A stretch of DNA of 64,000 bases from Zygnema circumcarinatum SAG 698-1b (taxonomy: Eukaryota; Plantae; Zygnematophyceae), in contig CM074811.1 in the NCBI GenBank assembly GCA_037447605.1, positions 1,178,001 through 1,242,000 of the forward strand. Reading direction: 5' to 3'. The notes beneath the pieces are model-generated. The model searched no databases. It had not been told where the DNA came from and saw nothing but the letters and a program-made list of their open reading frames with translations. Positions 1,442 through 41,566 of this stretch are shown here, piece after piece (position 1 is the first letter of the stretch; every line of letters begins with the position of its first letter). The position numbers were made by a program, and so were the translations under genes.

Positions 1442-2373
1442 GGGTAGTGATATTTCCACCCCTTTTTTGGATCCAAACACCCTTTCCCGGCCGGGCAGAT
1501 TTCAAAAGGGATTAAAAATGCTTTTTTCACACCTTTTTGGAATCGATACCCACCTTCTTCCGTCGGCTGATTTTATTTTTGCTAACCAAGGAAAATGATA
1601 CCCCGTCACCGCATTTTGAATACTGTATCCCGCCTACCTGAATTTTTTTTTTGAGGGAAAGAAATATCTGCCTGCCCGAATCCGCTCGGAGCGGAAGATC
1701 CGTCCGCCACGAGATCGTTCGCGGGTGTCCGTCTTTCACACGTGTGTGTCAATCGCAGCTGTCGATTCCCTCGCAGATCGCACCACTGCAGATCACCGTT
1801 CGATCTGCAGCCGGCCTTGATCTCAGCGAATGGAAAGCGCCCACGAGTCCCGTCAAAGCCGGATCGCACTTGCGAGTGCGCGCGTACCTCGGCCCGAGAT
1901 CTTGTTCTATTGTCAGCTCCCAGCCAATCAACATTTGCCACGTGTTAAATTTTTGACGTGGAAAATTTTGATTGGTCCAAACTCTTTATGTACAAAATTT
2001 TTGGTACGACCGTACGATATTTGTACGGACAAATTTTTGAGACGACTTTGGCAAGATACGTGGGCCCGTGCCATTCGCTGTGACCGAGCCCGGCTGCAGA
2101 TGAAATAGTGATCTGCCTCGTTGCGATCTGCGAGGGAATCGACGGCTGCGATTGACCGCACGCGTGAAAAAAAATTCAGGTAGGCGGGATATTCAAATGG
2201 AGTGAAGGGTTATAATTTTCCTTGTTTCGCAAAAATACAATCTGCCGATGGAGGGTGGGTATCGATTCCAAAAAGGTGTGAAAAAAGCATTTTCCGTTTT
2301 TAATCCTTTTTGAAATCTGCCCGGCCGGGAAGGGGTGTTTGGATCCAAAAAAGGGGTGGAAATATCACTACCC
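1442..2373. mobile_element. Long-TIR fold-back non-autonomous DNA transposon (element A; Merlin- or MULE-like)
   Basis: Termini GGGTAGTGATATTTCCACCCCTTTTTTGGATCCAAACACC and the reverse complement at 2335-2373. Imperfect arms continue to about 1815 and from about 2090; the right arm lacks about 85 bp. Flanked by direct repeat CATCAATAG (1433-1441, 2374-2382), or 7 bp if the termini are read as GGGG/CCCC. No transposase ORF. Confidence 0.9.
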
Positions 2374-2380
2374 CATCAAT

Positions 2381-3153
2381 AGGGCTTGTTTGTCGGACTT
2401 CACAAATAGTTACGGAAAGTTTGCGATCAGTATTGCGAAAAACAAAAGTTACTGATGTCTGATAGTGATTGCTTTGCCGAACCTGAACCGAACCTGTGGC
2501 AAGTCAACCGTGTGAAAAGTGCAAGTCCACTTTACGGACTGCACGCTCCCAAAAGTACGGACCGTACATGTCGTCCGTACGAATTTGTCCGCAGCCAAAA
2601 CAGGGCCAAAGGTCCTGTGCGGACGAAACGGGCGTCATCGTGACGTCATGGGGTCCTGCGGCCCCCCCTTCCTGCCCGCCTCCTCCCGTCCCCTCTGCCC
2701 GTGGGAGAGGGAGAGGGAGAGGGAGAGGGAGAGGGAGAGGGAGAGGGCTTTAGGTTTGCAATTCAAACCTTTAGCGTATAACAGGTTTCTAGGAAGGGTC
2801 TCCATTGTTATTTGTACAATCGACAAACAACCCAATGGCTTCCAGCCACGTCTTCACTTTTGCTCTGTTTTGCCAACGTGGCCACTTGTAATTGGTGCAT
2901 GTTGCAACCAAAGTAAAACCGGCCCATGCATGAACGGCGGGCGGCCCCAAGTTTTTGTCGCGGCGGGCGGGCCATGACGTAATGTGACGTGCCGTTGGGT
3001 CGTTTTTTGGAGGTCGTAGGGGAGGACGCGGTCACATCGCGTCACGATCACGGTTAGCTTCGGGAGCTCATTTTCTTACGGACGTGGGACTTGGAAAAGT
3101 TGCGGAAAGCTCATTATCAGTATTACGGACGTCTTTTAAGTCTGACAAGCCCT
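2381..3153. mobile_element. Short-TIR non-autonomous element B
   Basis: Left end AGGGCTTGT(TTGT)CGGACTT, right end AAGTCTGACAAGCCCT. Flanked by AAT (2378-2380) and AATGG (3154-3158). The TIR core GTCAGACYT is shared with the elements at 33232 and 40044. Contains a (GGGAGA)n tract at about 2702-2747. Confidence 0.75.
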
Positions 3154-3577
3154 AATGGCCAGCGCAGCACCCGGACCGGGGGGCCGGGCGGGGGGGTCTG
3201 GATAAAGTCAAGGTGTCATCGATAAAGTTAAGGGAAGTAGGGAAGTAGGGAAGTGAGGGAGGGAGAGGGGGACTAGAGGGGGAGGAGGGGAGGAAGAGAG
3301 TAGGAGTAGAAATGAGAGTGGGAGGAGGGGAGGAAGAGAGGTTTTGCTGGTGCGCAAGTGCTATGGTGGGCGCATCAATAGGGGTAGAGAGGGGTTTCAG
3401 GAGGTTGTGAAACCTGCAGGAGCTGGGGGGAGGGGCTGCCAGCTGGAGTAGAAATGGGAGGGGGAGGAGGGATTGGAGGGCTTGCTGCTGCGCAAGTTCT
3501 ATGATTACCCCGTCAATAGGAGTTGAGGGGCTCAGGAAGTTGACTTCTGCAGTGGCAGAGTCTGAGCATTGACGGCA

Positions 3578-6500
3578 ATGGCGGAGAGCAGTGTTGTGCT
3601 CGAAGAGGAGATAGATGAGAATTATGAACCTACTCAAGAAGGTAATTGTGTTGAAAATGCCAGTGTGGGCACAATGAATGGGATGGAAGGACTCCAACAG
3701 CCCGTTTTTCTTTTATTTAAAAAAAAAAATGTCCTTTAGTTGTATTACCTTTGAACGGTAACCAGTCATCATGTGATTTAGTGGATAGATGGGTGAAGAC
3801 TGTCGGCAGACGCCATTTTACTAAAACAATCACCTGTGCTTGTTTTGAGAAGAGGCTATTGGTGCAGAGAACTTCTGTGTCATATCCATGCCGATTCTTG
3901 ATGCTGCTGTCTTTGAGGTCATGATTCAAGCACTCAAATGTGGGCGCTTATGTCACGTATAGATTTGGACCGACAGTTTTTTAATGGAGATTTTATAACT
4001 TTTGGACTCGTTTGAAAGAGGCAAAGCTTTTCAAAGTAGTAAAGGTCATCTATGCTATGGTATTGATACTAAAGAAATCTTCAATCTCCACCCTGTGCGA
4101 GGGATACACGAGGTAAGGCACCTGTGCCTTTTTTACCTGTCCTTATAGACGTCAAGGTGCAGCAGCCTCACGATTTCATATGCGAGCTGAGCCACTTGTG
4201 CATCACATGTGCTCAGATATCCTCGAGTATGCTCAATGGCTTGGAATGGAATTGCCCGAAGAAAACGAGCTACTATGGATCGCCAGGGAGGGCTTGAAAG
4301 CGCCATTGCCAGACCGTTGGAAGCCATGGTACAGACCTTCAGCCTGCCAACTTATTGTTGAGCTTGTTACTGATGCCGGTGACACCTGCCTTATTAATCT
4401 CAACTTTAAGGATGGCATCTGGATGTTTAGAGGTCCCTTTTAGGCACCGGAGAACTCGATGGTTCTAAGGTGCAAAAGCCTTATGAAAAAAAGTTTAACC
4501 CCTGTAGGTAGTGCAACACAAATTATGGGCTACACCGTAGAGAGTTTAAGACTTTAATAGGAACCCAAGGTATCTTAGCCTCTTTTGGTCGTGCGGCCTA
4601 CCTGGGGCGGCAGTCGTACGCAGGATGATGAAATTTATTACTTCAACTTCTCCACCGGGGAAAGTGTGTGGGACCATCCCTGCGATGAACATTACAGGTG
4701 TGTTAAGAATCACGTGGCTCACTTCGCATACCTCTGTGGACCTCTCTCCAGTTTTGCCAAATATGCATGGCCGTTGAAAAATGAAAGGGGAACACCAAGA
4801 AGTACTCTAGTCTCTCGCAATATCCCTACGGTAACGCATAGGAAATGTGTTGATAGATTGTTCTACCCGCGAACCCTGTATCCCCCGGGGACGGCTGGGA
4901 AACAGAAATCTGTACAAGGACGAGAAGGCGAAGTTGCATGCGAAAAGACAGTTTCTCCTGCACGAGCAGCAGCCCCCCCCCCCGCAGCAGCAGTCTGGCG
5001 AGCCTCGGTCAGGACTGCTTCGCCAAGCCTCCCTGCCTCCACAGCCGGGCCAACAGCAGAAGCCATTGCAAAGGATGGGTTCTCTGCAGGCAATCCACAC
5101 TATCCAGCAACGGAGCTTAGGTGATGAGGTAAGCATATTTGGACTTCAGTCAAACCTCTAAACAAGATGTTGAAGAAGTTCAGCTGGACACCTTTGTATT
5201 CCTGAGCATTCGCGGTCTTCATGGAATTCTGAAACACGCTCGCACCGCATGATACATGCGGTTCGTATCTCATATAAGATGGACTCAAATCGGCAACGTA
5301 ATCTCCTTAATTCCAGGATTATTTTTCCCCTCCAAATCAGTCCAACCGTCTTAGTTTCAACATAAGCAGCTATGCCCCTTCTCGATCAAGTTTCTATCAC
5401 AAAATTTGCACGATATTTATGAGCGCATGGTTAATTATCCTATCAACGGGCAATGAGTGTGAAGTTTGGCACTGAAAATATTTGCAGTTTATTCTACATA
5501 CCCAAATGAAAAGATTACGATTCCAACTACTTCAGATTAGTATTCTTAGAATGGAAAAGTCTACTTTTGCCTCTCCAAACCTACACTTCTCTTGAATATG
5601 TTCTCTTCATGTCGTACTTGTTGCCAAAAGGATGAAAGTGCTTATTGTGCAGGAGAAGCGGCGTAAGGCAAGTGTAGAGAGGGGTTCACCTTCCTCCCAG
5701 CCAATTTCAAGCCAAGGCAGACCTGTGGATGGCTCGGGGTCTAATCCAGGCTCACCTATGCACGAAGCTTCAGGAAAGAATAGAGGTGCACAAGTCAACC
5801 CCCCCTTCAATCATCATCTTTACCCTTACCTGCCGCTGCCTGTTTGGAGTCGCAACCTCCATTTGAGACCGCTACTTTCCTTTGGCCTTGTTTGTATCAT
5901 CCTATCTTCTTCAACGGGGCAATTTTGTAGTATCCTTCTCCCACTGCCTCTGCTCTTTAAGTGCAATCCAATACTGACTCCTGCAAATATTTTCTTTTTT
6001 TTTTTGGATTTCCAGCCTCTTCGGGAAGACTCAGCCGGTCCTCCAGCCGCGGAACTCAGAACTCAGGCAGTGAAACAGAGGCTCCCCAAAGAGTCTCGAA
6101 TAAGGGAGGCACCGCTCGTAGACATTCAATCGGAGTGGAAATGGAGGTGCTAAAGGAGGAGCAGTCCGGTCCGTCAACTAATCTCAGATCAGGGATTTTG
6201 AAAAAGCAGACAGGGCAGAACCCCCAGCAAAGCAATAGTCGCAATTTTGGAACTTGGTCTCCGGAAGTGTCGGGTGGGTCCGTTCGCCGAGTGGCTGCGA
6301 CATTAGCACGGGGAGGCTCGGGAGATTTGACCGTAGCAACTCGCCATCTTGGTGAGTTTTTTCCACTCTAAATTCCTACGAGGGATTAGGGTTGTATGAT
6401 GCCGATGGATGTCTGGCCATGTTCGATGTGTATGGCCTGAGTTGGAAGTTCCGAACGCGATTTGTTACTGCGTGAAGGCAAGGGAAATGCGGACTCATTG

Positions 6501-6986
6501 CCTATGATACTTTTGGGCAAGTGTATATCACTTCTATCTCGAGGTTTCTTAACATACCGCAACACGTGCATGTTTACTCTCGCATTGCACTGTCAAGTAT
6601 GTGTTACGTTTCTCTGGGGCATGAGCCATCCTCTGCTCTTGATTACATCAGTTTAAGTCTAACCTGTACAATTCGTTAGCCAAAAGGTGCATATCTCTCC
6701 ACAGGTGGGAAGGCATAGCTTTATTCCCATTGTACTATTCATTTTAAGGATTCGTTGTCGACATAATATTGGAAAGGGAAGTACTAGAATTGTCGAACTC
6801 CTCATCGTTACTTCGCTCCTATTAACATTGTCGTGGGACTTGTGGGCAATGCTTCTTCTTCTTCGTCTTCTCCTTCTCCTTCTTCTTCTTCTTCTTTTTC
6901 TTCTTCTTCTCCTTTTTCTTCTTCTTCGTCGTCTTCTTCTACTTCTTCCTCTTCTTCTTCTTCTTCTTTTTCTTCTTCTTCGTCTA

Positions 6987-7017
<31 letters not shown>

Positions 7018-10000
7018 TTCTTCTTTTTCTTCTTCTTCGTCTACTTCTTCTTCTTCTTCTTCCTCTTCGTCGTCTTCTTCTTCTTCTTCTTCTTCTCCTT
7101 CTTCTTCTTCGTCTTCGTCTTCTTCTTCTTCTCCTTCTTCTTCTCCTTCTTCTTCTAGAACCAGAAGAATGGACTGACTCGGAGACGGATGATGGAGGTC
7201 ATCAAAAGCCCCAGTATCCAGCGTCTCCTCATGCTCGCGTTCAGGCCATGGCTTATGGCGACGGAGGGAGGGAGAGGCTGAAGCTCGTCACAAACTCGCT
7301 CCGAAGATCAGAAAGCGGAAATCCTCTAGGCTCTGTTTTGGTTGCTCCATCACGCTATGGTATGTATTCTCATATCGCCACTACTTTCCCCGCCCCCATT
7401 CTGTTTCGGGATCAAACAAGAAATGTGTGGACTGAGGTAAGGTCTAGACATACCTTCATGAATTGCATGGTTTTTGCAAAGCAAGCTGATTTTATTGTTT
7501 CAGTTGAAGCAACTCCAGTTCGTTAATGGATAAATGGAGCTTGCTTGGCAAGAAGGGTTGTGGGATTGTCTTCATGCATCCTCCTTTTGTCCCTGTTCCT
7601 TGCTCCATATTGAGAGCAGCCAAAATCAGCGATAAAGAGCGGGATCTTGCCATTCGACAGCAGCAGCAACGTAGTCAGCTGTCACCATCAAAGAGCGTTG
7701 GAGCTTTGAAGGTGAGGAGTCATAAGGTGTAAAATGATCAAAGTGGTTGCCAAAAAGTCATAAGTTATACGCTCTCAAGATGGTTGCAACAACCTTTTCA
7801 TTCGTGTATGCGTTAGTGTTTGTGGGTGCTTAAGGGCCAATTTGGATAGCTGTGGAAAGTGCGAGCAATATCATTTAACATGCTTTGGTCAGCTATGGCT
7901 GGCCATACAGGAGTCAGGGACGAAGATGTTTGAAGATTTATGCAACTGGTGAACTGAATAACTCCAAGCCTTATTGCCAGGTTTCGGATCGAAAGCAGCG
8001 GCAGGAAGAAGTTGAGGAGCGGCGACGGCAGGAGGAGCAGCACAGGCGAGAGAGAGAGAGAGAGAGAGAGGGAGTGGCGCGAGACAATGAAGGAGAGGTT
8101 GTAGCAGAGGATTTCCGCAGGCAGCAGACAATAGACAGGCAGAGAGGGGAGCATGAAGACTGGGACGTACAGGTGCAGGTATGCTGCAAAATTCTATACT
8201 TAATGTGTACTTAGGAAGATTTTCCATGCACTGCCTGAGAGCTGCTGTGTGACTATCAGCCGCCCGAAATTTCGAATGATTACCGCATTGCATTTCATTC
8301 CACCGTATGTAAAGTGTGTCGCAAAGTGACTTTTTCATATAGGAGATTGCCAACGGCATTTCGAAAGAACTGACTTGGATTTCCTTAGCTACCAATGAAT
8401 CATGACCATTTTTTTTTTTTTTTTTACTATCTAAAGACTTCTGGACGAGTTTGGTAAAATGAATTTTGTCGCTAGACTGTGTGAGCAGACCGAGTTTGAC
8501 CAGGGCAACTTCTGACACAGAGGAATCAATGCAGCATTTGCTCTGCTTGTCTTTTTGTAGTCCGCACCATGTTTTGAACAAAGCAAACTGCAGGGCATAT
8601 GATAACACTTTAGACACCGAGAGCGGTTAAATTCCCACAATTACAAGGCATGCTAGTAATGCATTTAGCAAGGTATAACCACGATCTAGTCATCCTACCA
8701 ACAATTGGCTAAGACCATTTGACAAAACTAGTCAAGTGGTGTATGAACCCCTTGTAATCGTCATCTTGTGAGCCCTTGTTAGCCCATTCTGCCATCAAAA
8801 CATTCCTTCAATATTGCCAAAAGGGATTGGGTGTTTATATAGGGAGGCCAAGAGAGGGATTCAGCTGGTCGGGATGATCGAAGAAAGAGTATGGAGAGTT
8901 CAACAATGTGGAAAGCTCAAAGGCAAAACGAGCACGAGATGGCCCTAACGAGACTGGACGAGGGAGTGGTCGCTGATATGGAGGTGAGGCAAAAGGAGGG
9001 TTTCTCCTCTTATAGCAGGAGGGTTAGCTGCATGCAGCAGTACATTATGAGGCAAAGAGAGGCTGAAATGAGTGGGAGGGGGGAGAGAAAGCCTCATCAG
9101 CTTCGATGCTCAACTCTGTAACTACTCTATTAGGGACTTAAATTAGGTGTAGAAGGACTGATATAGCTGATGCAAATAGCAGCGTGAGATGCTATGGTTT
9201 GGGCTTAAGCTGGGGTTTACGGTGAGTTTATCAACATGATTGTGTATACAGCATTGACATGAAAGTGTTTCGTCTCCGTTCGCGATTGATTGCTTACCAC
9301 AAATCCACTTCTTAAAAGGTAATGTGGGAAAAAACATGCTATTTGAACATAGGCGATAGTATGAATCCAGAAGAAAACTTGGAAAGTTGGAGATTTTTCG
9401 AGTCATGAAACGGGAGCAGCTAACTCACTCACGGATTTTCTGTTACAAGCTTTGACACGCGTAGTTTTAGGCCCTCCCGTTCAGCCAACGATACTGATCC
9501 CCCATTTTTTCCCTCTCCTTCCCCGGAGCAGGAGGGTGCTCGCCTGCAAGAGATCGCCAATGCCTCCCGCAGACGTCTCGCCAAGTTTGAGGCAGAATGC
9601 GATGTACGGCTCGCAAAACTGCAGGCAGATAGAGAGATTCTTGTCCGGAAGAGGGAGAAGGAGATCACAAAGTTGGCGGAGAGGTTGGGGCAGGTGAGTT
9701 TTCCACTTCGCATGCTGATGCAGGCAGAGGATAGTCGTCTGTTGTTTGTGGAGCACATTTATGTCTTGCAATTGGGAGGTAGGAAAGGGAAATTGCCATG
9801 CATTTGTCTGTTTCTAGGACTTTGTTCTGTTGTGGGTTCTATTTGTCAAGTATTTGACAAGGTTTGGGCTGCATGCTAGTGAAGTTGGTCTACCAAAAAT
9901 GAAAGCTATTCCTGTAGTGGGATGTCGGATTGACAAGAGACAATGCATTTGCCTCATCCATCATTACATTATGCTTGCCAACTTGGACGGAGCTGTTCAA

Positions 10001-23296: not shown

Positions 23297-23567
23297 GGCA
23301 GCGCCGGGATCAGACTGCTATATGGAGAGAGCGCCCCGTGTCTCGCAGAGAGAGAGAGGGAGAGAGGGAGAGAGAGAAAGAGAGAGGGAAGAGGGAGCGA
23401 GGGAGACATATTAGGGTTGGCGAGGACACGAGTGGGCGCTAGAGCATAGGAAGACTGTAGGAACACACTAGGATCCACGTGGACGAATACGAGTTCGTCA
23501 CGTATCGCCACGTGGACATACTCTCCGTGCGGCCGTCTGGTTGTACGGTACAGTACTAGAATATAAA

Positions 23568-25300
23568 GGAAAATTCTATTCGGGGGCGACTATTTACAGT
23601 GTACGGATTCTGAATGTAGTGTACGATTTCGCCGGGCAGCAAAAAAATCAATTTTTTGGTTGCCCGGCGCTGTTTCATACTTTTTAGAATACATACAGAC
23701 CTTTTTCGTCGGATGTACGGATAGTGATTTGAAATGTACGAAGCGCGCGCGTCTACAAGGTATAAGGGCGCAACACGTGGAGCAACATGATTGGTCGCGG
23801 CAACATATGACGTGGCAAGTATGTTTGGGACCGTGACGTGACGAAACGAGACGCGACAAAAGTGGAGTCCGCGGACGGCTGTCGGAAATGGCCGGAATTA
23901 AAACTGACAGAAAAAGATAGGGCACATAACGTAGCGTGTTTCAGGAAAAATCTGTCAGTTTTTATTCCCGCCATTTCCGACAGCCGTCCGCGGACTCCAC
24001 TTTTGTCGCGTCTCGTTTCGTCACGTCACGGTCCCAAACATACTTGCCACGTCATATGTTGCCGCGACCAATCATGTTGCTCCACGTGTTGCGCCCTTAT
24101 ACCTTGTAGACGCGCGCGCTTCGTACATTTCAAATCACTATCCGTACATCCGACGAAAAAGGTCTGTATGTATTCTAAAAAGTATGAAACAGCGCCGGGC
24201 AACCAAAAAATTGATTTTTTTGCTGCCCGGCGAAATCGTACACTACATTCAGAATCCGTACACTGTAAATAGTCGCCCCCTTCTATTCTCACACCTTTTT
24301 TGTCTACACACAGGCCTCTTTTCGCCGGGCAGATTTTAAAATAGCACAAAAAAGAACACACCTTTCACACCTTCTCACCTTTTTTTTTTCACCTTTTTTT
24401 TCCCACCTTTTTGAAATCGATACACGCTACTAGTCCTGAGCGGCCGAGCTCCGTGAGTCCTTTTTCTGTCGGGCAGATTTTACTCCTTATCATTTATTTT
24501 CAGAGAAAAAAATATCTGCCTGCCCGAATCCGCTCGGAGCGGAAGATCCGTCCGCCACGATATCGTTCGCGGGTGGCCGTCCTTCACACGTGCAATAATT
24601 TTCCGCCGTCGATATTCACGCAGATCGCACCATGGCAGATCACCGTTCGATCAGCAGCCGGGCTCTGTCCCACGTGTCCCACCCAAGCCGGCTCCAAGGA
24701 CCGTACAAAAGGCGTACGCCCGCAGCTTCGAGGAAAGTCAAAAAACGTAATAATTAAAGTTGAGTGCCTGTACCAATCACAGTTTGCCACGTCTAAAAAG
24801 AGCACGCGGCAGATGGTGATTGGTTCAAGCTCGCAATGTAAGGAATTTAGACTTTCCTCGAAGCTGCGACCGTACGAGTTGTGTACGGTCCTCGAGCCTG
24901 CTCGGGTGGGACACGTGGGCGTGTGCCATTCGCCGGAAGCGAGCCCGGCTGCCGATCGAACGGTGATCTGCCGTGGGGTGATCTGCCGTGGTGTGATCTG
25001 CTCTAGAATCGACGGTGTATAGTTTCTGCACGTGTGAAGGACGGCCACCCGCGAACGATCTCGTGGCGGACGGATCTTCTGCTCCGAGTGGATTCGGGCA
25101 GGCCGATGAAAAAAACAAGAAGGGGTAAAATCTGCCCGATGGAGAAAGGTGTGTATCGATTTCAAAAAGGTGGGAAAAAAAAGGTGAAAAAAAAAGGTGA
25201 GAAGGTGTGAAAGGTGTGTTCTTTTTTGTGCTATTTTAAAATCTGCGCGGCGAAAAGAGGCCTGTGTGTAGACAAAAATGGTGTGAGAATAGAATTTTCC
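23568..25300. mobile_element. Long-TIR fold-back element (outer, about 1.03 kb without its insert), related to element A
   Basis: Termini GGAAAATTCTATTC(TCACACC) ... GGTGTGAGAATAGAATTTTCC. 8-bp TSD AATATAAA (23560-23567, 25301-25308). Inverted arms run almost to the centre (about 24741/24850). Segment 24510-24590 is nearly identical to 1660-1740 of element A. Confidence 0.9.
23582..24280. mobile_element. 699-bp palindromic MITE nested in the left TIR of the outer element
   Basis: Arms 23582-23911 and 23951-24280 (330 bp, mismatches seen only near the loop) with a 39-bp loop. Termini GGGGGCGACTA/TAGTCGCCCCC. 8-bp TSD TTCTATTC (23574-23581, 24281-24288). The ORF track shows identical peptides on both strands. 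Confidence 0.95.
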
Positions 25301-25475
25301 AATATAAAACGACAAAACCCCCCAGCCCGGACCAAAGCCGGCCCAATGTACGGTCTGCCGGTTTGGAGAGCGCCGGATCCCCAACCGTCGCCGGCCGTCT
25401 GGAACCAGGTGGCGACGTTTGACTTGTCCACGTGGCTCCTAACTATGCCAATATGTACAGTACTATGAACTACGT

Positions 25476-25575: not shown

Positions 25576-26344
25576 CCTGGCTAAAGGCCAAAGGTCAGAC
25601 ACTAGGCGCCACGGACGCCACGGACGCCACGGACGGACCAATAGGAGCGGGCTTGAAAGAGGCAACCAATTCAGAGGAGTATGATGTCGGTGGCCAGTAA
25701 CAGGACGACACGTGGCGCTGGGGGCCAATCACAGCGAGGGGCGGCGGCCGGTACATTATTGAGAGGCGCCGCGAGAGGGAGGGAGGGATGGAGGGCGAGA
25801 GGGAGGGAGAGAGGGAGGGAGGTACCATTGAGCAGTGGGACTGTGGGCCCGTCTGCGTTTGATTCATCCTTCATCTACTGATAAGGGGGCGCCCTGTGCT
25901 GCATGGTAATGAAGAAGAAGCGGAAATTTGTAAATCAATTGTGGAGGTTCTGTCGTTATGTAAAAGGATAATCTCTTGAAACTGTGCTTCTCTCTGTGAT
26001 ATATGGTGTTCTCTGAATGGCAAGCTCGGACGAGCTGTACGGATGATGATGAACCCATGGGGATTTCTTATGTAAATACCCCATTCACCATCTTTTGCAT
26101 ACCCTCCTCCTTTGAGTAAGTTTTTTATCCAAGCAGCGATTGAGCTCAAAACTTCAAAAATTAAAAACCTGGTGGGACCGTCTCTGATGCCGCTCTTAAT
26201 TATGAAAATTCCTTTTTTCTTGCAGGCTCAAACCAAACTCCTAATTAAAACTGGCTTTGAGCTCGCGCTGAGCTGAAACTTTTGGGTTACATCCAGGCCC
26301 TTTATTTTTTTTTTTTGTTAGTTCCTGCGACGATCTTCGTGGTG

Positions 26345-26564
26345 ATGGCGGCCTCAGAGCAGTCAAAGTTTATCTACGCTTTTGTCGCTAGCGGGAGGAC
26401 GGTCCTGGCGGAGTACTCGGCCTTTAAGGGCAACTTTCCCTCTCTGGCGGTGGAGTGCCTTCAGAGTTTGCCAAAAAGCGGCACTTTTTCATTCACGCAT
26501 CACAAGCACATCTTCAATTACGTGGTTGAGGGCGGCTTTGGTAAACTTCAAGTCAGTCATAACA

Positions 26565-26598
<34 letters not shown>

Positions 26599-29525: not shown

Positions 29526-32500
29526 TCACTTACGAATGTTTCCCGCATAAATGAGGCGCAGTCGCTCGTTAAGAAGGACTTGCATTGCCTGAGTGAGAGT
29601 TTCCGTGTTCACTTGAAGGTCATAGCGGATGTTATCCAAGAACCTGCACAAGCAAGATAAGACAAAAAAATCATAGAAGGGAAAGTCGACCACCGTCCCG
29701 GTGACGAGTTTTAAGACCACTTTGGTTGTAAAATTTGAGAGTTTCTTGGCTCTTTGATGCTTGTTTAGTTCCGAGATGTGGATACGTACGCTTTCTGCCA
29801 ATAAAACGAGCCCAGAATCTGTCGATATGTGCGCCCAGTTGTAACCATTCCGTCCCAAATCCGTTGCAGTGCGTAAAAGTCCGTAAAGACATTATCGAAT
29901 GCAATGTTGAGGAACCCACCCAGCAGACTATCGTCGATGCGGGCCAGCTCAGAAATCTGCCATTCCAACCTCCGCAAAGTTGATCTTTAGCTCATCGAAG
30001 ATCAACATTTCCACCACCTGCTATTCTCGCTTCTTTATTCTTCTAAAGCCGATCATTTCGTTAAATTAAACTCATCAAACGACATGCACCGGTCGAACAA
30101 ACCACTTCCACTGGCAAAAGGAAAACGAGCTCCACTTTCTCCTTATTACTCTTTATGTTCTTCCACTTATTATACTAGAAGCCGACTCTTACCGGCATAA
30201 AAGGCGAATAATAGACTGCGCGTTGGACTTCCTCCTGTGACAGCTGAGCATGTTTTGCAGCTTCTGAAATCCTACCCACAAAAAGGTTCTCAGAAACAAA
30301 CAGTTCAGGACGAAATACACAGAGTTCAAATAACGACAACGACAAGTACGGCCCCTCCAACACCAGCCCTAAAAGTGAGGTTTTGCACGCTTACTTGTAC
30401 TGAGCAGTGAGACCTGCAATAGTGCTGACCAGGCCTCCATTGTCAAAAGCAAAAGCATCGATAGTTTGCGCTCTCAGTGCTCCTCGAAGAAGCGACATCG
30501 ATATTTCGATATATCGGAGTGCTTCTCCGACATGAGCCAAAGCGCGTTCCTGAGCAGCTTCAGCAGAAAGAATGTCCCTCCTTCGGGAAGATAACAAAGC
30601 AACCTACAAAAGCGTTGACCAGACTGGTAAGAGAGAGAGAGAGAGGGAGGGTGGAAGTAGATATAAGGACAGAGGAGGGAGGGGAGTGAGAGCGGAGGGA
30701 GAGCGGGAGAGGGGCGGCAGAGGACAATGAGATGAGAAGGGGAAGGAGGAGTGGCGAGAGAGGGAAGGGCGGGAGGTAGAGTGACAAAGAGCGACCGGGT
30801 AAGGAGAGAGGGGGCGGTAAGGGAAGGGATATGCATAAAAGTTGAGTCCCAAAAAACTACCCACATTTTGCTCGGCCACATTTTCCGCGGGATCTCCGCC
30901 ATCCCATCCGCCATACAACTGTTCCAGAATCGCCAGTTGACGTTTTTCTTTCTCAGCTTTCAGATTCACCTGCATGACGTCATGCTACCTTCAAGTCATC
31001 ACGTTGTTGGCATAAAATGACACCAACTGCCATGTCCTCTTTTCCGAACAATGCAGACCCGGAGAGCCTATTGAACAGCAAGAACAACCACCATCCTTCG
31101 CCCTAACAACTTCAACTTTAAACAACAAAAAGCTTATCTACAGCGTCTGTTTCCACCATGCACAACTCCACCCTAAACAGGAATCACGATTTCCTTCCCA
31201 TATCCTCGCAGACCCTGAACTGTCCAGAAACATAACACAAACACCCCAAAAACGCTCCGTTTGTCAAGATCAGTCCACATATGGTGCCGCTGGTGAGATT
31301 TGAACCTGCGTCTGCGCGTCAGCCAGAAGCTCCTTCGGTCCTTTACAGGCCTCCGCGGCAGCCGCCTCTTCATCGCGAGCATTCTGAAGAACAACCTCTC
31401 CCTCCTTCACATTCTCCTCTGCCGTTTGAAGGCGCCCTTGGTAGTTTTTGATGCTGTTGTCGGAGCCCGCAACAACCAACAAGCAAAGTAGAGCTGGCAA
31501 GGAGGTCAGGTGAGAGGGTTGAGAGCTAAGGGAGGGAGACGGCGGGCGGGGAGGGAGGAGAGGAGAGGGAGAGGGGGAGAGAGAGAGAGATACAGCGAGA
31601 GAAAGAGAGACAGGGAGTTGAACACTCACCATGCAGCAAAGCAGCTCTTCTGCAGCTTTTTCAGCTTCTTCACCAGTTTCTTCTGCCCGGACTCTGCAAC
31701 TTCTCTCTTCGTTTGAGCAAGCTTCAATGCCGCGTTGACTTCCTCCACCAACTTGTTCCCCAAAGAAGGAAAATATGCAAATACATACAAACTGGTCACC
31801 TCCAAACTCGTCCTCACATTGCAAAGAAGCATATAATTACTGGCAGTTGGTTCAAAACCTCGAGTACGAAGTCTGAATCACTAACAGGGAGGGCACTCTT
31901 AAATGAGAAGCCTGTTCCATCGTTACATTAATGACACTCACTAATAAATCAACTCGCTAACACATTTCAATACTAACCACAACAGTCCATTTCCAAGATG
32001 AGCGCTCAAGTTAACTGTTGTAATTGCTATTGTCACAATCATTATCATATTACCATCATCGTAAAGTGGTTACGATAATGATGATAATAATACTAATGAT
32101 AATAAAAATGATGATGATGGCATTACCATAACAATGGTGAGGAGATGAGCGGTACCTGCTGCTGACCATAGAGGCGCGCCTCTGCGCCCTCCAGCCTCTG
32201 GATCTCCTCCTGCTGGCGGAAAAACTCCTCCTTCAGACCCTCCGCCCAGCCCTCACCATTTTCCGGAGGGGGTTGGTACTCCGCCTGCCGCACACTCGTC
32301 GACCGCTTCGTGGCCTGACCATAGTGCTGCGCCCTCCCTACATGCGTGCCCTCAGAAACCGAACAAAGGAAGACACAGGAGAGAGAGAGAGAGAGACAGC
32401 GATAGAGTGAGAACGAGAGCAATGTACCTCTCTGTAGTCGAGGGCCTCCTCTCCCGCCAGATGCGTGGGCTTTTCAAAATCCACAGCAGGACGCGGCTTC

Positions 32501-32562
32501 CCCGGCTCCGGCACGAACTCCACCGCCGCCTCCTCCTCCGGGGTGCGCCGCCTTTGCGCCAT
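29526..32562 (-). CDS. Uncharacterised coiled-coil protein (about 9 exons)
   Basis: Chain of helical exons with GT-AG ends, mostly joinable in frame (the exon 2 and exon 6 acceptors are uncertain): MAQRRRTPEEE / EEFFRQQEEIQRLE / LVEEVNAALKLAQTKRE / QLYGGWDGGDPAENVAE / ALAHVGEALRYIE / ISEAAKHAQLSQEEVQRA / LGGFLNIAFDNVFTDFY / LLNERLRLIYAGNIRK*. Confidence 0.78.
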
Positions 32563-32593
32563 GGCCGCCCTCCCAATCCCCCTCCCCCTTCCC

Positions 32594-32625
<32 letters not shown>

Positions 32626-33231
32626 TCTCTCCCTGTCTCCCTCCCTCTCCCCCTCTCCCTCCCTTCCGCCCGCCCACCCTCGCACTTGAAGGGCCCAACT
32701 CCTGCAACTCGCCGCCTCACACTCACAGGTTAGATCCAGCCTTGGCCAGTTGGCCCCCACCCAGTCAGCCTGCATCCAATGGGATGGCGCCACGTGTACA
32801 TTCCCTGCACGCGCTGCGATTGGCCGGGTTTGCCACGTGGCAGTCGTCCTCCAAGAGTCCCGGAAAGAAACCGTCCCCATTGGTCTGCAGCCATCAGGCC
32901 CTGCCACGCTGGTCAACCGTGGTCACCGCAGGTTGAAGTCGACAGGCGGCGCCGACCAGGTACGGTAACCGCGGTGGGTGTGGACGGACGCTGAAACTGT
33001 CCACGTGGCGTGCAATGATTGGCCGAAGTCGCCCTTAAAGGCGGGGCCCGAAAATGTGAAATCTGACGTAAGGCAATTTGGGATTCCCACATGGAACCCA
33101 CCCTCAAAAACTGCCCGGATGCCGATCCATGTCGCTGTTCCATGCTGTTTCAAGTAATTTTAGAAATTTAGGTTTACGTGGCATCAAGTTATTGGACAAT
33201 TGATTTTTTTCCAAGGTACGACCCTACGAAT

Positions 33232-33390
33232 AGGGGGTGTCAGACTTAAAAAATTTCAGTACGCGTGTTCGTAAGTTTGACATCAGAACGAGTACTCCAG
33301 TATAATCGCAATCCTCCTGCGGCGGAGTACTTTCGTAACCTTTTTTTTCGTAACGCTTTTCGTAAGATTTTGTTAAGTCTGACACCCCCT
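33232..33390. mobile_element. Short-TIR MITE (element C)
   Basis: Perfect TIR AGGGGGTGTCAGACTTAA / TTAAGTCTGACACCCCCT with internal CGTAA repeats. Flanks AAT (33229-33231) and AATGG (33391-33395). Confidence 0.9.
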
Positions 33391-33916
33391 AATGGCGCGG
33401 CTCTCCGAGAAGGCTCCACCTGGTGGTGACGTCACAAACGACCAGTGCGGTCAAATTCGTACAGCTCGTACGCCACCGTGGTCGTGTCTGCCTATCAAAA
33501 ATTGCCACGTCACCACGCTTATGCTCCGAAGGTACGAATACCGTACAGAAAATGTACGAAACGGTACTGTACTGTACTTGCAAGTGGGTGAGTACACATG
33601 TACGGACGGCCTCCTGCAATTCCCCTCTTGCAGAAACTTCTTGTCCCTCCCCTCTCTCTTCCTGTCTCCTTCTCCCTCTCCCCTCTCCCTCTTCCCTCTC
33701 CCTCTTCCCTCTCTGGGGTAGTCTGGAGATCCGCTCTGTGCATGTGATATTCAGCGTCTCGGGCCTTGATCCCCGCTGATTTCTTTTCTGATTTATTCGT
33801 GGAGTCGTTTGTTCTGTGAAGCGTTTATTTTGGCACCTGGTTTGCTTTGATGGCTGGGCCATCGTGAAGATGTTGATGAAACTGTTATTGAAGGACGTGT
33901 ATCTCAAGCTGCAGCC

Positions 33917-36900
33917 ATGGCGTCCATGGTGGACGGAATGCGTCACCCTCGCCATGGCGTTTTCTCCGCGGCTCTGGTCATAGTCATTTTGGCTATAACT
34001 TTCAATTCCTTCTCACAAGCGCTTGAAGATGGCTGTCAACACAGCAGGCTGTATCATGACGAATGCAGAGCTCTTGTGGACTTGCATCACCTTTTTGACC
34101 AGAATTCCTTCGCAAGGAATTGGCCGGATCTTGCTTATTTGGCCTGGAACCTCACGAAAGACCCTTGCAAGAGCTGGTATGGCGTCCTTTGCGCGGAGGT
34201 ATGAGCTGAATTCCTTCTGTTAGTCTTGCGTGTGAGCAGCTACCATTGGTTATGTCTGGAATGCTGCTCGCCTGCAATATGTTTGGAACTTCTGGTTATG
34301 CTAGATATAGTGAAAGCCGATCTTTGTGTCGGTTTGCAATTTGGAAAGTCAAGCTACAATGAAGAATATATTGAAGAAGCTTGATAGCAGATAATGATTT
34401 TTCCTCTAGCGGTCGGTGGAGGGCCGTCCCTACCGCCCACTAAGGTGTCAAACTTTCTTCGTTCCAATTTTTGGAATGGAGGGCCAGTGAACACTCTCAG
34501 CAGACGTGCCTTTTAAGCAGTTAGTGTTCCGGAGTCTCCTTTGGAAGGACTCAAACATACTTGGTGTACATTGGATTGCATATGTGATAAGAACAGGGGA
34601 TAGAGGACTGGACATGCGCATGTGCAACTTTTCGTGTATGCCAATGGTAATTGAATTGCGGTGTCACGTATGTAGAAATCCTATGCAGCAGTCGGGGAAG
34701 CATTCAAACTTCCGTTTTAAGCCTTGCTTTTAGGCCTAGAAATGTGCATGTGCATTCGGGGCTCAGTTGGACTGTCTTCAGTTCAATACTCACAGGACGA
34801 CCACCCATGCTATTATGTGATGCAAGCAAGACAATGCCACTTGCGGTTTTTGGGTCGTTAAAAGGTCGTTGCATCATCACTGGACATGATTGCCTCTCTG
34901 CTTCTGATCCTCTGCAGGTCAATGGCGGGCTTAACCGCACTGTAACCTCTCTAGACCTTTCGGGCAAGGAATCTGTTGGCTATGGTGCGCTATTATACGG
35001 TGCGAAAATTCCGGATTCAATTATGAAACTCAAGAATTTGACATCTTTGGACTTGTCTAGCAATTACTTTTCCTCTTACTCGATTTCGAACTCGAGTTTT
35101 GCGGCATGGAATCTGCCATATCTGCAGGTGAGACGGTTTTTCTGGTGAGGACGTGGGGAATCCTGGAATCCGAGCAACAGTCAAGACGAGTCTCAAAGGC
35201 TTGTCATATTCACTCAGGAAAACTGTGAATGTGACTTATCGACACCTGCTGGTTGTGCAGTTTGAATCAGGGCCTTTCCTGCCCTTTCTTCCTTTGCCAT
35301 GTCTCTGCGTTCAAGCCCACCTTTTCGGATTATTTGCATCCTTTCAAAAAAAAGATTCAATGCATTTGTGACATTCGCTTCATATAGCATCGCCGTTTGC
35401 GTCATTCTTCCATACGATGACAACGTTCACATGTTTTTAATGAAGCGGAATGCTCATGTGTGATGCATTCACAAATGAATTATGATGTGCTTACATTCCA
35501 GGTGCACATCTCTAAGAAGTGGGTGATGCCTCAATTTGCGTTCTGATACTCTTTCCACTGCCTTGTGCTTTTTGGCATACTCCACCTTTAAAGAACCTCA
35601 CGCTGAAGAACAACGTGTTTATGGAGATTCCATATGAAATAGCGACTCTTCCTATGTTGCAATTTCTGGACTTCAGCAATAATCCGGTACTTCTGTCCTT
35701 GTCAGGGCTCCGATCAACCCTTTGCTACTTTGAATTGTGACTGTACTTGTAAGCGACTGTACAGTTTATTGTGAGCAGGAAAGCTATCGTGAACGCATTT
35801 CTCGGTCTCGTAGTTTGGATATCTCTGTACGCCAAAGTAGGCCGTGGCTCTCTCCTGCCATTTCCTTTTTAACAGTCTATCCACTGAAGGGTACTTCCAA
35901 AGCTGGAGGGTGCTGTCTTAAGAGACTTTTGTATGGGTGCATGCAGCTGAGTCCACCGCTGAGATCGAATGTTGGGACATGGGACAGTCTCGTGTATTTT
36001 AATCTCAGCAGGTGCTCGGTTTATGGGTCTGTACCATACTTTATTCGTGGTGAGTTCCTCTACATCCTGAACGCAGAAACATAGATTGTCTGTCTATCCT
36101 GGTAGTCAGGGTGAGTTAGGCCAACTGAGGTGGAGGCTGTAAATCGTCCGGATTGGCGCAAACAGTCAAGAGAGAGCGAGGGATAGGAGGAGGAGAGGAG
36201 TAGCTTCAGGGGGGAAAAATCGTTTCCGCTTGTTATTTGGTAGTTCTGTGTGATGGTGACATCCACAGGCTCTTAGTTTAGTTTGACAAGGGACTTCACT
36301 GCAGAAAAAAAGAATTACTTTCTTCTCTCTTGTTTTTGCATGACAGGTGGTAGTCAGAGTCTGTGCAGATATGGTCAGACTGAAAGTCTTGGATCTTTCG
36401 CATAACCAGCTTTCAGGCTCAATCCCTGACTGGCTTGGAGAACTCCGGAATCTTCAGGTAAAACCTGAGCTTTAAATGGCAGCCCTAATTTCATACTTCC
36501 AGTTGACCTTCATTTCCACTATCCGTTTCCCCCCTCCACTTTTCATTGAAACTGAAAGCAAAGCCCTTTTTCTCTTTAGAATAAGAAAAAGAATCATGAT
36601 TTCCTAGACAGTCCTTCACTCCCGTAGCGCCTAAGTCTATAGGTGAAATGCCTGCTCCGCTATTCAGTCTATGACAGACAGGAGAACTTTTACTGTTTCA
36701 TTCTGAAACTTGAGTTCCCCACTTTCATTCACTGATGCCAGCCATGACTTCACATACCTGATTGTCTCTCCCCTTCAAAACAGTTATATTCGTGTAATGT
36801 GTAAAGTGTCGGGTGTCAAAAAGGGAATGGTCAGTGAGTTTTATGTTGAGTGCTCGTTACTCATTGGGTTTGCCCATCTATTCTGCAATAATTGCAGTAT

Positions 36901-37767
36901 CTTAATCTGGACGAAAATCGATTTTCTGGGCAAGCACCTTGGTTCTTGTATCGTATACCGGAGGTGCACCTCAATGGCAATATTGTCTGCAGGTGCTGTC
37001 TTCCCCCAGCAATTTGCTTTTTCTTTCTTTACTATTTGAAACCCTGATCGGAACTTCAGGGTTCTGAATATTCCAAAAGTTCAGTTTTTTTGTTAGTGTC
37101 GCATGCTGCGCTTTTCACATTCCCACCTCTTTATATGACGTCATGCAAATCTATAGGTTTTTGGTGACTCTCCTCGTTGTTCACTTTCTTGTTTTCGTGC
37201 AGTCGAAGCTTTGGATCTCCATGCAAGTCCTTCTCCTCCATCTACCTGTGGCTGGTGGTCGCTGTCGGTACTTGCATTGCTGTGATGACTGTCTGTGCCA
37301 CTGTCTGCATCTACTTGAACTACCGCGGGAGGTGAGAGCGTCTACCCCATAGCTACACTTCTTGTCTTTTTCCAAAAAAAAAAGAGTTAAAACTTCAAGA
37401 ACGTGGCTGTTATTTTGCCGCCTCCTTCGAGCTATGGAACTCTCACTTCACAGCTCCATTGCGAAGTCCCTCACACGCATTTAGTCTATGAGGGCCAAGC
37501 TCAGTTTGGAGCTCAGTCGGAGCTGAGAAGGGGGAATTGTGTCCATGCAGGCGTGAAGGTGGTGCTGAGAGGACAGATCTGCAGGAGAACCCCCATGGAG
37601 CAGTGCCAGTCTTTGAGGAGGCAAAGGATGAAAGCACTTTGAATATTGAAACCCGGCCGTCCTTTCCCGTTGTTGTTGATGGAAAGATCATAGGAATGGC
37701 CTACGCAGATATGGACACACTGCACGGCGTACCTGAGAGCGGTCACTCTTCGGGGACGGAGAGATAA
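33917..37767 (+). CDS. LRR receptor-like protein (signal peptide, LRRNT, LRRs, TM, short cytoplasmic tail, no kinase)
   Basis: Hydrophobic signal (AALVIVILAITF) and LRRNT cap (WNLTKDPCKSWYGVLC). LRRs LTSLDLSSNYF, LQFLDFSNNP, LKVLDLSHNQLSGSIPDWLGELRNLQ and YLNLDENRFSGQAP. TM IYLWLVVAVGTCIAVMTVCATVCIYL at about 37230-37320. Last exon about 37550-37767. Confidence 0.85.
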
Positions 37768-38754
37768 CCCCGAGCCCAAGGGGGGGGGAGATGGGGCCCG
37801 TGGGAAGGGGGGAAGCTTGAAATGAGTTCCGTTGTTCCCTGAAAGCAGACAGCGATGCTGGTCTGCCTTGAAGCAAATGGATCTGGGCGATGACTGATGA
37901 GAAGCCGAGAAGTTGAGGAGGCTGCAGCTATTCCTCATTGGAGCCGATGGAGCTCAATTGGACTTTCTTCCGCAGCTCGCGCCTGTCGACGAAGGCTCGT
38001 TGATTCCGCTTAGGAAATATGAGTGCTTCTGCGATGGGATCGCTGCGGCGGCGAAGTTACCGCAATAGATTTTCCATTGAAACTTATTTAGAGGTAAATA
38101 ATTCTTTGCTATGTGTTAGAGTTCCTGCTATGCAAAGTATTGGGCTAAGCGAAGTACTGGGCTTTTGACGACATAGGGTGCGGTTAGGGAAGAATAACTT
38201 AGTACGTGGACAGCGCGCCGCTGTAGAAGATGCAATTGACTTAATCGAACGTATCATTAACTTATCGAATGTAGCTTGTTATGAGCATAAACGAAGAGTC
38301 TGTGAAGCCTGTTTATTATCTTTTTAGCCGGGTGACACATTTATGAGACTCCATATGGGTGCATATAGTTTCTGGCAAATGGGTCACGCAGTCTGACTTC
38401 CACAACGTTTTTTATCGCTGGAGAACGTCACCACTCCCCCTCCACACACTCCCCCTCCACACTACCCCCCTCCACCTTTCCTCACTCCCCCCTATTCCAG
38501 CCCCCGTAGCCCCCTCCCTCCACTCCGACCCCCCCCTCCCTCTCCCCCCACTCACCTCTCCCAACCTCCTCCCTCCCCCCTTCCCTCTCCCCACACTGCC
38601 CTCTCCAAACCTCCTCCCTCCCTTCCCCACCCTCTCCCCCCCTCTCCCCTTCCCCCGCCTTGAAAACAAGGCGTGACTTGAAGATACAATGTCACTAGGC
38701 AGACATATTTATGCTTCGTCCTTTTTTTGTAAAAAATACGATAACTTCAACACT

Positions 38755-39819
38755 CTATAATTCCAATACCATCTTCTCGCCACTAAGCCCCGTCTTAAAC
38801 TCCTCCAATGCCTTCTGGATCGATGCCAACCCTCCTTCAACTAACTTGATTTTGGGACTGGCCACAAACTCTCCCGACTCCAACTTCCCCTTCAGCCAGT
38901 CGTTAAAAACAAAGGCGAAAAACTCATTGCGCTCCTTCTCCTCCGACGGCGTTACAATGAACTTCACCATCGTGTTCCGCCAGTTCGCCATCCTCCACCA
39001 CAGCGAACCGAAGGTGAAAGGAGCCATGGCTACCTTCCCCAGCCTCGCCTCCCCCTTCAGCTCGTTCAAGACCTTCACGCAAGGCAGCACATCTCCTCCA
39101 GCCGCAAGAAAGGCCGTGTCAACCGTAACCCCATCCTCCTTGGCAGCCTTTACGATATTAGCCACAACATCCTTGTCCTTGTAGTCAAACACCTGGCTAG
39201 CCCCCAAGCTCTTGATGTACTCATGATGCTTTTGACTCGCTGTAGCATAGACCCTGAACCCCATCAGCTTCGCAATCTGAGTAGCCGTTGAGCCGATACT
39301 GCTGGCGGCTCCCCACACGAGCATCCCCTTCTTATCAGCCGGACCATGCATGGTGTCGAGCGGCAGCCCAATGGTGTGCCAGCCCGCCCATACGGTAAGA
39401 GCCGCCATAGGCAGGAGGCTCCCCTCGTTAAAACTCATCCCCTCCGGCAGAGGCACCACGGTGGAGGCCGGCACAAGCACCCTCTTCTGGAAGGCGCCAT
39501 AGTCGGGCTCCCCCTTCTTAAAGAAGCATGGAGCAAAGGCTGCTACGCGCGTGCCCGGCTTGGGCGCGTCGGAGGGGCTGGGCGAGCCCACGGCGAGGAC
39601 GATCCCGGCAATGTCTGAACCCAGCACCGCCGGGTAGCGGACGGCGGGGAAGCCGTAGGCGCGCTGGAGGTGGTCGATGGGGTTCAGGGCGATGGACCTC
39701 ACTTCTATGAGGATTTCGTGTGGACCCGGCGACGGGGTTGGGCGGTCTTGAAGGAGAAGGTCAGCGCGGGATTTGGGGAGAATGGCGGCGAGGTGCGAGG
39801 AAGAGGAGGAGGAGGACAT
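38755..39819 (-). CDS. Intronless MDR-superfamily NAD(P)H oxidoreductase, enoyl-reductase-like (CipB/LovC/ToxD type)
   Basis: Uninterrupted 354-aa ORF: EVRSIALNPID, YPAVLGSDIAGIV, YGAFQKRV, LVWGAASSIG (nucleotide-binding), YATAS..H.EYIKSLGASQVFDY, and C-terminal GLASIQKALEEFKTGLSGEKMVLEL. No catalytic Zn ligands seen. Confidence 0.93.
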   Translation of the reverse strand: MSSSSSSSHLAAILPKSRADLLLQDRPTPSPGPHEILIEVRSIALNPIDHLQRAYGFPAVRYPAVLGSDIAGIVLAVGSPSPSDAPKPGTRVAAFAPCFFKKGEPDYGAFQKRVLVPASTVVPLPEGMSFNEGSLLPMAALTVWAGWHTIGLPLDTMHGPADKKGMLVWGAASSIGSTATQIAKLMGFRVYATASQKHHEYIKSLGASQVFDYKDKDVVANIVKAAKEDGVTVDTAFLAAGGDVLPCVKVLNELKGEARLGKVAMAPFTFGSLWWRMANWRNTMVKFIVTPSEEKERNEFFAFVFNDWLKGKLESGEFVASPKIKLVEGGLASIQKALEEFKTGLSGEKMVLEL

Positions 39820-40043
39820 GGCTTGGAGCTTGTGTTGCTGCGGCGCGGGTGGGTAGGGGGGGTGGGAGAGGAGCGGGAGAGGTGGGAGGAGAGGGGGGAG
39901 GGAGAGAGGCGTGGGAAGAGAGAGGGAGGGGGGGGGGAGACGAGAAGACGGGGGAGGGAGAGGGACGTGGCGAGAGAAAGAGGGAGGGGTATGGAGGGAG
40001 ACGAGGGGGAGGAAGGAGCGGGGGAGGGGCACCTAAGGAAAAT

Positions 40044-40245
40044 AGGGGGAGTCAGACCTTGACCATCGCTTACGAAATTCCCGAATTCCTTATACTAAAA
40101 GTCAATTCTTTCGTGTACGAATTCCGGGTCTGGATCCGCGGATCCGGCAAGCATTTCCGTACCGAAATGCGTACCTAGCCAATGCTAAATTCGCCCGACA
40201 GGCTTACGAAATTGATTTGGCGATGGTCAAGGTCTGACTCCCCCT
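40044..40245. mobile_element. Short-TIR MITE (element D)
   Basis: Perfect 26-bp TIR AGGGGGAGTCAGACCTTGACCATCGC with subterminal GCTTACGAAATT direct repeats. Flanks AAT (40041-40043) and AATGG (40246-40250). Confidence 0.92.
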
Positions 40246-41512
40246 AATGGACGGGTCAATTTACGGAGTTTTAAAACCGACGTGGAAAGTTTGTTCGAAA
40301 AACCACAAACGGAAGATTTTCAAGTTAAATACATTTTTTAAAAGCTTGCCCTGCCAATAGAGGGGTGCCACGTGGCGCGCAAGTGGCACTCAGGATTGTT
40401 TGAGACTGCCCTGAAATTCGGGCAAGATGAAAATGCCGTTTCAATGTCGGAATTTTGACACTGACGTAGTCGTGTGCCACGTGTCGTATTTTTGTTCGCT
40501 GCTTAGATTCTATCAGTCCTAGGAGGGCTGCTAGGAAGCTACTATGGTGACGTCATTAAAATGCTGCAGCCAATCAGAAGTCGCCGACTACCCTTTAAAT
40601 TGTACATCCTGCGCGTCATGGGCGATAATCTTTGTCGTTTGCGTGGAACAAGGAAATAATATCTCATATCGCCGAAGTATCGGCTGTGGCCCACATGGCT
40701 TGCCGGTGCCGGGCTGCCACCGTTGGCGCCAACACCGTACAGTACTTTCAACCGAGTTTGCCGTGACCGGCAGTTTTTGTCGGCCATATCCGATACGTCG
40801 GCGATACGGGGATATGCATACACTCATCGCAAACGAGAAGCTGGCCGCCACGTCGCACAAGCCGCCAAGCCCTGCCTGGCCGTGCTTCCTCTCGCTTGGT
40901 CGGTGGCTCCTGATTGGCTGCCACACCTCTGCTGACGCATCAGACCATCATCATGGTGCCGCTACTGGAGGCGTAATTTGTAATAATATAAAAAGATGAA
41001 AAAAAATGAAATCCGGTGCAAGGAAGAACAGGAGCCGTCCGATAATTTGACTGATCGGACGGTACAAATTCACTCTGGTCTCCCAGTGTTATGACGTACA
41101 TTGACGTCATTCAAATAAACCGTACGGTGCTCACAATGGGCCAATCAACGTCGCGACAAAACCTACGGCACAGAATTTGTTGCATCCAGGTGCTTGCCAC
41201 GTCACGTCCGTCACGTCCGTACGGGGATACTCACGTCCAAACGCAACTGCCGCTTTGTCAACAAATTCGGGCAGCCACTGAAACATTTCATACCTACACG
41301 ACCGCGCTGCCCGTGTGTTAGGTCAGAAGTTTGGAACTTTATTCTGCCTGCCCGATGCCGCAAATCCAGAGGCGACCCCCCTGCCCGACCAAGAAAACAT
41401 TTTTCTCCAACCACCAAATATTTATACCTGCCCGTCCGTGCCTGTTCTCGCACTCGTACACCTGTAACTCCCGTCCCTTCCACCTTCCAACCCTCCCTAA
41501 CCTCGAGATCGT

Positions 41513-41566
41513 CCAATGACGACCTGCCACGTGCACACGTGTGAACACGTGGCGAATCGCCATTGG
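41513..41566. promoter_or_regulatory. Inverted pair of CCAAT-N9-CCACG (ERSE-I-type) elements upstream of the GT61-like gene; telo-box AAACCCTAA at 41717-41725
   Basis: CCAAT gacgacctg CCACG (41513-41531) and CGTGG cgaatcgcc ATTGG (41548-41566), about 190 bp upstream of the ATG at 41753. Confidence 0.6.

Follow-up and report, generated by a model that had tools for sequence, protein, structure and literature searches.

Why should a 64-kb stretch of algal DNA carry, in front of apparently ordinary genes, more than a dozen copies of an element known from the promoters of endoplasmic reticulum (ER) stress genes? The stretch in question (called the window; 64 kb of contig CM074811.1 of Zygnema circumcarinatum SAG 698-1b, from which all counts below are taken unless other collections are named) contains the composite sequence CCAAT-N9-CCACG, which is identical to the ER stress response element I (ERSE-I). 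ERSE-I belongs to the promoters of ER-stress chaperone and folding genes, and the neighbouring genes here are not of this kind. The answer that we consider probable, if well short of certain, is that selection maintains the sequence as a composite cis-regulatory element, which would serve as a common building block of promoters or enhancers and not as a switch for ER stress only.

A pattern search on both strands gives 13 exact sites. All twelve that a preliminary description of the window had listed were recovered with the same coordinates and strands, together with a thirteenth that it had missed (33177–33195, minus strand), and the two one-mismatch copies that it had placed near 24805 and 33491 lie at 24805(−) and 33491(+). 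In 100 shuffles preserving the dinucleotide composition, the mean number of exact sites is 0.11 and the maximum 2, and none reaches 13; the excess over chance is thus about 100-fold. The preliminary description had suggested varying the spacer as a check. When CCAAT-Nk-CCACG is scanned from k=0 to k=30, all 13 sites are found at k=9 and none at any other spacing, and the remaining three relative orientations of the two motifs show no spacing peak. Relaxing the right half changes little (14 sites for CCAAT-N11-ACGT and 13 for CCAAT-N10-CACG, with no further peak), and the single extra CCAAT-N11-ACGT site, at 9557, lies within a region read as a WW-domain gene. At the same 9-base distance, the CCAAT half occurs inverted twice, as ATTGG-N9-CCACGT at 32819–32838(+) and 25710–25729(−), with about 0.1 expected, and the orientation of this half may hence not be absolutely fixed.

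Could chance or base composition produce such an excess? CCACGT and ACGT are generally enriched in the intergenic regions that hold the sites, with a CCACGT density of 4.08 per kb compared to 0.38 per kb elsewhere in the window, while the corresponding CCAAT densities are only 3.4 and 2.08 per kb. However, from the 30 CCAAT and 36 CCACGT motifs in these 8.8 kb, simple arithmetic gives an expectation of only ca 0.06 coupled sites, which means that promoter composition is not the cause. The shuffles never exceed two sites, and the neighbouring spacings are empty; with 13 sites at k=9 and none elsewhere, the spacing scan rules this explanation out, and we assign it practically no probability.

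Conservation extends beyond the ten bases given in the preliminary description, to a unit that reads RRCCAAT[C/G][A/G]-N6-[G/T]CCACGT[G]. The T following CCACG is present in all 13 exact sites, and the base preceding it is G in ten and T in three. On the other side, the first base 3' of CCAAT is C or G in 10/13 and the second is A or G in every site, while each of the two bases 5' of CCAAT is a purine in 9/13. The cores and their distance are kept while the spacers vary, as had been claimed. The binding matrix of NF-Y prefers flanks like these, that is, CCAAT[C/G][A/G] with purines before CCAAT. The left half of the unit, a putative NF-Y site, matches this type of preference, and the right half fits an ACGT-core basic leucine zipper (bZIP) site of the G-box or abscisic acid-responsive element (ABRE) type.

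Another possibility is that the partner of NF-Y is an E-box protein of the basic helix-loop-helix (bHLH) or bHLH-ZIP class, either USF-like or a plant G-box bHLH, instead of a bZIP. The complete CACGTG is found in 8/13 sites, which then read CCAAT-N10-CACGTG and fit the human NF-Y/USF module, where CCAAT and CACGTG lie 10–12 bp apart, also in LTR12 and MLT1 repeats (PMC4889920, PMC12065363). The two systems have in common a fixed distance between CCAAT and, in these eight sites, CACGTG, as well as an occurrence in both host promoters and mobile repeats. They differ, however, in that the invariant part here is CCACGT, in that the carriers are foldback and terminal inverted repeat (TIR) DNA transposons and not long terminal repeat elements, and in that the lineage is a plant one. 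In the other five sites there is no E-box, the sequence being CCACGTC, CCACGTT or CCACGTA, while CCACGT is present in all 13, as would suit a CC-flanked half-site for an ACGT-core bZIP. Moreover, a search of the window for CCAAT-N10-CANNTG gives nothing outside the CACGTG subset. A bHLH partner is therefore considered unlikely.

A bZIP partner would also be in line with what is known from land plants. Plant NF-Y interacts with HY5, ABFs and bZIP67; its subunit NF-YC binds HY5 as well as ABFs, and G-box/ABRE motifs abound in those promoters that are misregulated in nf-yc mutants (PMC3602376). One proposal is that the CCAAT box acts as a coupling element for ACGT/bZIP sites in general, with NF-Y as a general bZIP partner (PMC3602376). 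The likeness to the plant G-box/ABRE with its coupling element lies in GCCACGT(G), which is the ABRE/G-box core. In the literature searched, we found neither a rigid 9-base spacing as a genome-wide plant promoter grammar nor the module in algae.

We now consider where the sites lie (Table 1). All 13 are found in four intergenic regions with diverging gene starts at their borders, which are read as head-to-head, this status being assumed for region (i), where only the right-hand gene was read. Four nested DNA transposons carry seven of the sites, and the other six lie in DNA where no transposon was found, which bears out the placement in promoter-type and transposon DNA proposed earlier. None falls inside a gene as read, again in agreement with the preliminary description. 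The orientation of single sites relative to the nearer gene is not constant, and the inverted pairs span 51, 52, 54 and 64 bp. No transposon is seen in the DNA surrounding the pair at 41513–41566. The neighbours comprise WW-domain, proline-rich, VAMP7-like SNARE, coiled-coil, leucine-rich repeat (LRR) receptor-like, enoyl-reductase-like and GT61 genes. Pfam matches among them are ADH_N/ADH_zinc_N, Glyco_transf_61 and LRRNT_2, of which the last two are the evidence within the window for a plant lineage, while the WW-domain and longin-type first exons were identified by reading of the sequence. When many open reading frames were scanned against Pfam, most candidate exons matched no family, and several of the gene identities consequently rest on such reading.

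Table 1. Coordinates of the sites, their carriers and their surroundings in the window (MITE, miniature inverted-repeat transposable element).
Feature	Positions	Strand	Span	Remarks
Region (i)				left of WW-domain gene (ATG 3580; exon 1 MAESSVVLEEEIDENYEPTQE, then gt; WW-type exon at 4579)
Foldback transposon A	1441–2374			long inverted arms; GG termini; target duplication ATCAATA; inserted at left border (TA flank) of element D
Inverted exact pair	1924–1975	1924+/1957−	52 bp	exact centre of symmetry of foldback A
TIR element D	2382–3152			TA-flanked; terminus GGGCTTGT..CAGACTT, common to MITEs E and F; ca 430 bp upstream of ATG 3580
Inverted exact pair	2832–2895	2832+/2877−	64 bp	inside element D
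Region (ii)				between proline-rich gene (minus, ATG 23297) and VAMP7/longin-type gene (plus, ATG 26346)
Foldback transposon C	23568–25300			same family as A; target duplication AATATAAA; foldback B nested in left terminus
Foldback transposon B	23582–24280			330-nt arms, 99% complementary; target duplication TTCTATTC; each arm with one exact site (23776−, 24068+; identical sequence)
Inverted pair	24773–24823	24773+/24805−	51 bp	centre of foldback C; 24773+ exact, 24805− with one mismatch (CCGCG); homologous to pair in A
Region (iii)	32564–33916			between coiled-coil gene (minus, ATG 32563) and LRR receptor-like gene (plus, ATG 33917; LRRNT_2)
Exact site	32776–32794	+		213 bp upstream of ATG 32563 (minus-strand coiled-coil gene); ATTGG-N9-CCACGT variant next to it
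Exact site	33004–33022	−		region (iii)
Exact site	33177–33195	−		region (iii); 38 bp left of MITE E
MITE E	33233–33389			related to D by terminus; without site
One-mismatch site (CCTAT)	33491–33509	+		ca 410 bp upstream of ATG 33917 (LRR receptor-like gene); just before CT-rich tract
Region (iv)				between intronless enoyl-reductase/ADH-like gene (minus, ATG 39819; Pfam) and gene with later exon Glyco_transf_61 (plus, ATG 41753)
MITE F	40045–40244			related to D by terminus; without site
Exact site	40354–40372	+		535 bp upstream of ATG 39819; ca 330 bp without MITE F
Inverted exact pair	41513–41566	41513+/41548−	54 bp	third CACGTG between; ca 190 bp upstream of ATG 41753 (GT61 gene)
GA-/CT-rich tracts	2700–2750, 3230–3480, 23340–23410, 25765–25822, 31529–31617, 32570–32700, 33640–33715, 39881–39962, 41600–41690			

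It is important to establish how many of the sites are independent of each other. A blastn comparison of the flanks (±150 nt) joins the four sites of the A/C foldbacks to each other and one arm of foldback B to its other arm, but no further sites apart from the trivial case of overlapping pair partners; all other similarities are low-complexity CT/GA tracts. As flank similarity is limited to these two groups, the 13 sites represent about nine independent origins.

Each of the four elements that bear sites, A–D, has termini in inverted orientation and is flanked by a duplication (in D, by TA), and the promoter regions of the window act as transposon nests. One such nest lies at 23560–25308, where foldback B is inserted within the terminal 14 bases of foldback C. 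In an ungapped comparison of the four arms of the A/C family, 63/66 bases are identical at the 11 core positions, compared to 37/54 in the spacers and 90/240 in the 40-nt outer flanks. Since the cores were held while spacers and flanks drifted, the comparison points to selection on the site, be it for the element or for the host. Homologous positions in these arms also carry CGAAT-N9-CCACGTG, one mismatch away from the motif (1827–1845(+), 2059–2077(−) and 24914–24932(−)); these may be decayed or variant second sites within the individual arms.

Do the transposons then own the motif? It could be part of their own promoter, or a site for their transposase or for a host factor, and the free copies would in that case be worn relics without host function. 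Such an origin would account for the seven sites carried by the four transposons, for the pair at the exact centre of symmetry of foldbacks A and C, conserved amid decay, and for the nesting of transposons in the same regions. However, the six free sites have no flank similarity to the transposons or to each other, and no terminal repeats were found around them. Three unrelated types of transposon carry the site at differing internal positions, while MITEs E and F, which are related to D, do not have it. The extended consensus also matches the preferences of host factors, and the combination of kept cores and free spacers in unrelated contexts argues for a common trans-acting reader and not for common descent. 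Ownership by the transposons is thus, in our judgement, quite improbable.

As the sequence is that of ERSE-I, one must also ask whether these are true ER-stress elements, which would make the neighbouring genes an unfolded protein response (UPR) regulon controlled by a bZIP28/ATF6-type factor and NF-Y, as in Arabidopsis and mammals. The consensus is identical to the last of its ten defined bases, including the strict 9-base spacer, and ATF6 or bZIP28 binds ERSE-I only jointly with NF-Y (PMC3935401). The sites here also share the NF-Y-type CCAAT flank and the promoter-proximal position, and three of the flanking genes are secretory (VAMP7-like SNARE, LRR receptor-like and GT61). However, classical UPR genes such as BiP, calnexin, calreticulin or PDI are missing from the surroundings of the sites, as the preliminary description had already maintained, and the other neighbours are the WW-domain, coiled-coil, proline-rich and enoyl-reductase-like genes. 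Four site-bearing intergenic regions within 64 kb are moreover far too dense for such a regulon; even with the loose UPR motif of PLACE, CC-N12-CCACG, no more than about 2% of the promoters of Arabidopsis are hit (PMC3602376). The ERSE-II sequence (ATTGG-N-CCACG) has no match in the window. Further differences from ERSE-I as known are the excess of about two orders of magnitude in an arbitrary stretch, the constant CCACGT, the frequent inverted pairs and the location on DNA transposons. Because the neighbours are ordinary and the site-bearing regions so closely spaced, a strict UPR regulon appears to us a rather remote prospect.

We return to the reading of the element as a composite promoter or enhancer module. 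The strict spacing with a free spacer, the consensuses of the two half-sites and the promoter location all suggest co-operative binding by NF-Y and a bZIP. In such a mechanism, CCAAT would be occupied by the NF-Y trimer and CCACGT by an ACGT-core bZIP dimer, whose class could be G-box, ABRE or bZIP28, and the co-operation of the two would tolerate only a 9-base spacer while leaving its sequence free. The module would act upstream of ordinary genes in head-to-head regions and in either orientation, and an inverted pair, being symmetrical, would suit two genes that diverge from it. Four DNA transposons of the non-autonomous kind, three of them foldback elements and one a TA-flanked TIR element, have settled and nested in these regions; they bear the element too and have retained it while the neighbouring sequence decayed. 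The proposal made in the preliminary description, of a constrained-spacing element with the ERSE-I consensus that occurs in promoters and transposons next to non-UPR genes, stands in these respects and is here refined by the longer unit, the head-to-head placement and the inverted pairs.

Several points weigh against this reading. It is built on one 64-kb window, and the gene starts were read from open reading frames and splice-like junctions. The seven transposon-borne sites mean that a part of the count reflects transposon biology. Five of the sites lack a full G-box, and the sequence does not tell one bZIP class from another. The binding of NF-Y and a bZIP is deduced from flank preferences together with the literature, and transcriptional activity and the lack of stress specificity are likewise inferred. 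Finally, the VAMP7-like SNARE, the LRR receptor-like protein and the GT61 enzyme are parts or clients of the secretory pathway, which would leave room for a link to secretory load.

Although common, the element is not found in every promoter of the window, as there is at least one other promoter-like region, at 46.0–46.4 kb, that contains CCACGT without a coupled CCAAT and has no CCAAT-N9-CCACG. Within it, the stretch 46190–46370, between the GT61 and GCN5-type genes, is dense in dyads of the CGATA/TATCG type (for example CGATACGATATTATCGG) and appears to use another promoter grammar. Nearly every gene start read, whichever its strand, has long GA- or CT-rich tracts beside it, in the interval from the motif sites to the ATG (Table 1); these are probably features of the 5' untranslated region or the core promoter. 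Two repeats were also noted, namely a low-complexity repeat with a period of 9–12 bases inside a long open reading frame (6798–7211; according to the frame, it encodes runs of Ser, Glu or Arg) and a tandem repeat of about 77 bp encoding a Pro/Ser/Leu-rich sequence (43839–44180).

Among the neighbours, the intronless enoyl-reductase/ADH-like gene (38758–39819, minus strand) has best relatives of 61–63% identity, and the named ones are fungal (chytrids and lichen-forming fungi), which would fit a candidate horizontal transfer. A look-up of the exact protein gave no record, and the collection contains no relative closer than 63%. The loci of two of the best homologues (L003–L006) have no ERSE site.

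We have also scanned other collections for the pair pattern. Viral contigs gave no match and metagenome contigs two loci, apparently one plant-like stretch, with about one expected by chance; both collections probably hold little algal nuclear DNA, and the scans therefore say little about the lineage. In this stretch (L002, Ga0115844_101387, 1746–1804; the same stretch as L001), three exact CCAAT-N9-CCACG sites share two G-boxes within 59 bp, and copia-type coding remnants lie several kb away on the contig. Plant-like DNA other than that of the window can thus show the clustered arrangement, which has no bearing on its frequency.

Going further, one can speculate that the NF-Y/bZIP composite has become a main general promoter grammar of this streptophyte lineage, often in the form of a symmetrical pair between diverging genes, and that site-bearing transposons are preferentially retained in promoters and seed new ones. 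This extension is tentative, and we would sooner doubt than accept it. Nothing in the window points to transposons having brought the grammar to further genes: the host regions already have their own G-boxes and CCAAT boxes (in region (ii), for instance, CCACGTGG and CCAATCA boxes), and the related MITEs E and F are without the site.

If the reading as a composite module is correct, what is treated in plants and animals as a specialised stress element would be in common use as a promoter module in a relative of the land plants. It would provide a simple case of a co-operative transcription-factor grammar, with a rigid spacer length, a free spacer sequence and a pair that works irrespective of orientation, and a view of how NF-Y/bZIP partnerships were employed prior to, or alongside, the specialisation that they underwent in land plants. 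The transposon copies allow one to ask, as in a natural experiment, if host promoter modules are spread or merely tolerated by mobile DNA, and the pair of 50–60 bp is a candidate part for building compact bidirectional promoters in this group of organisms.

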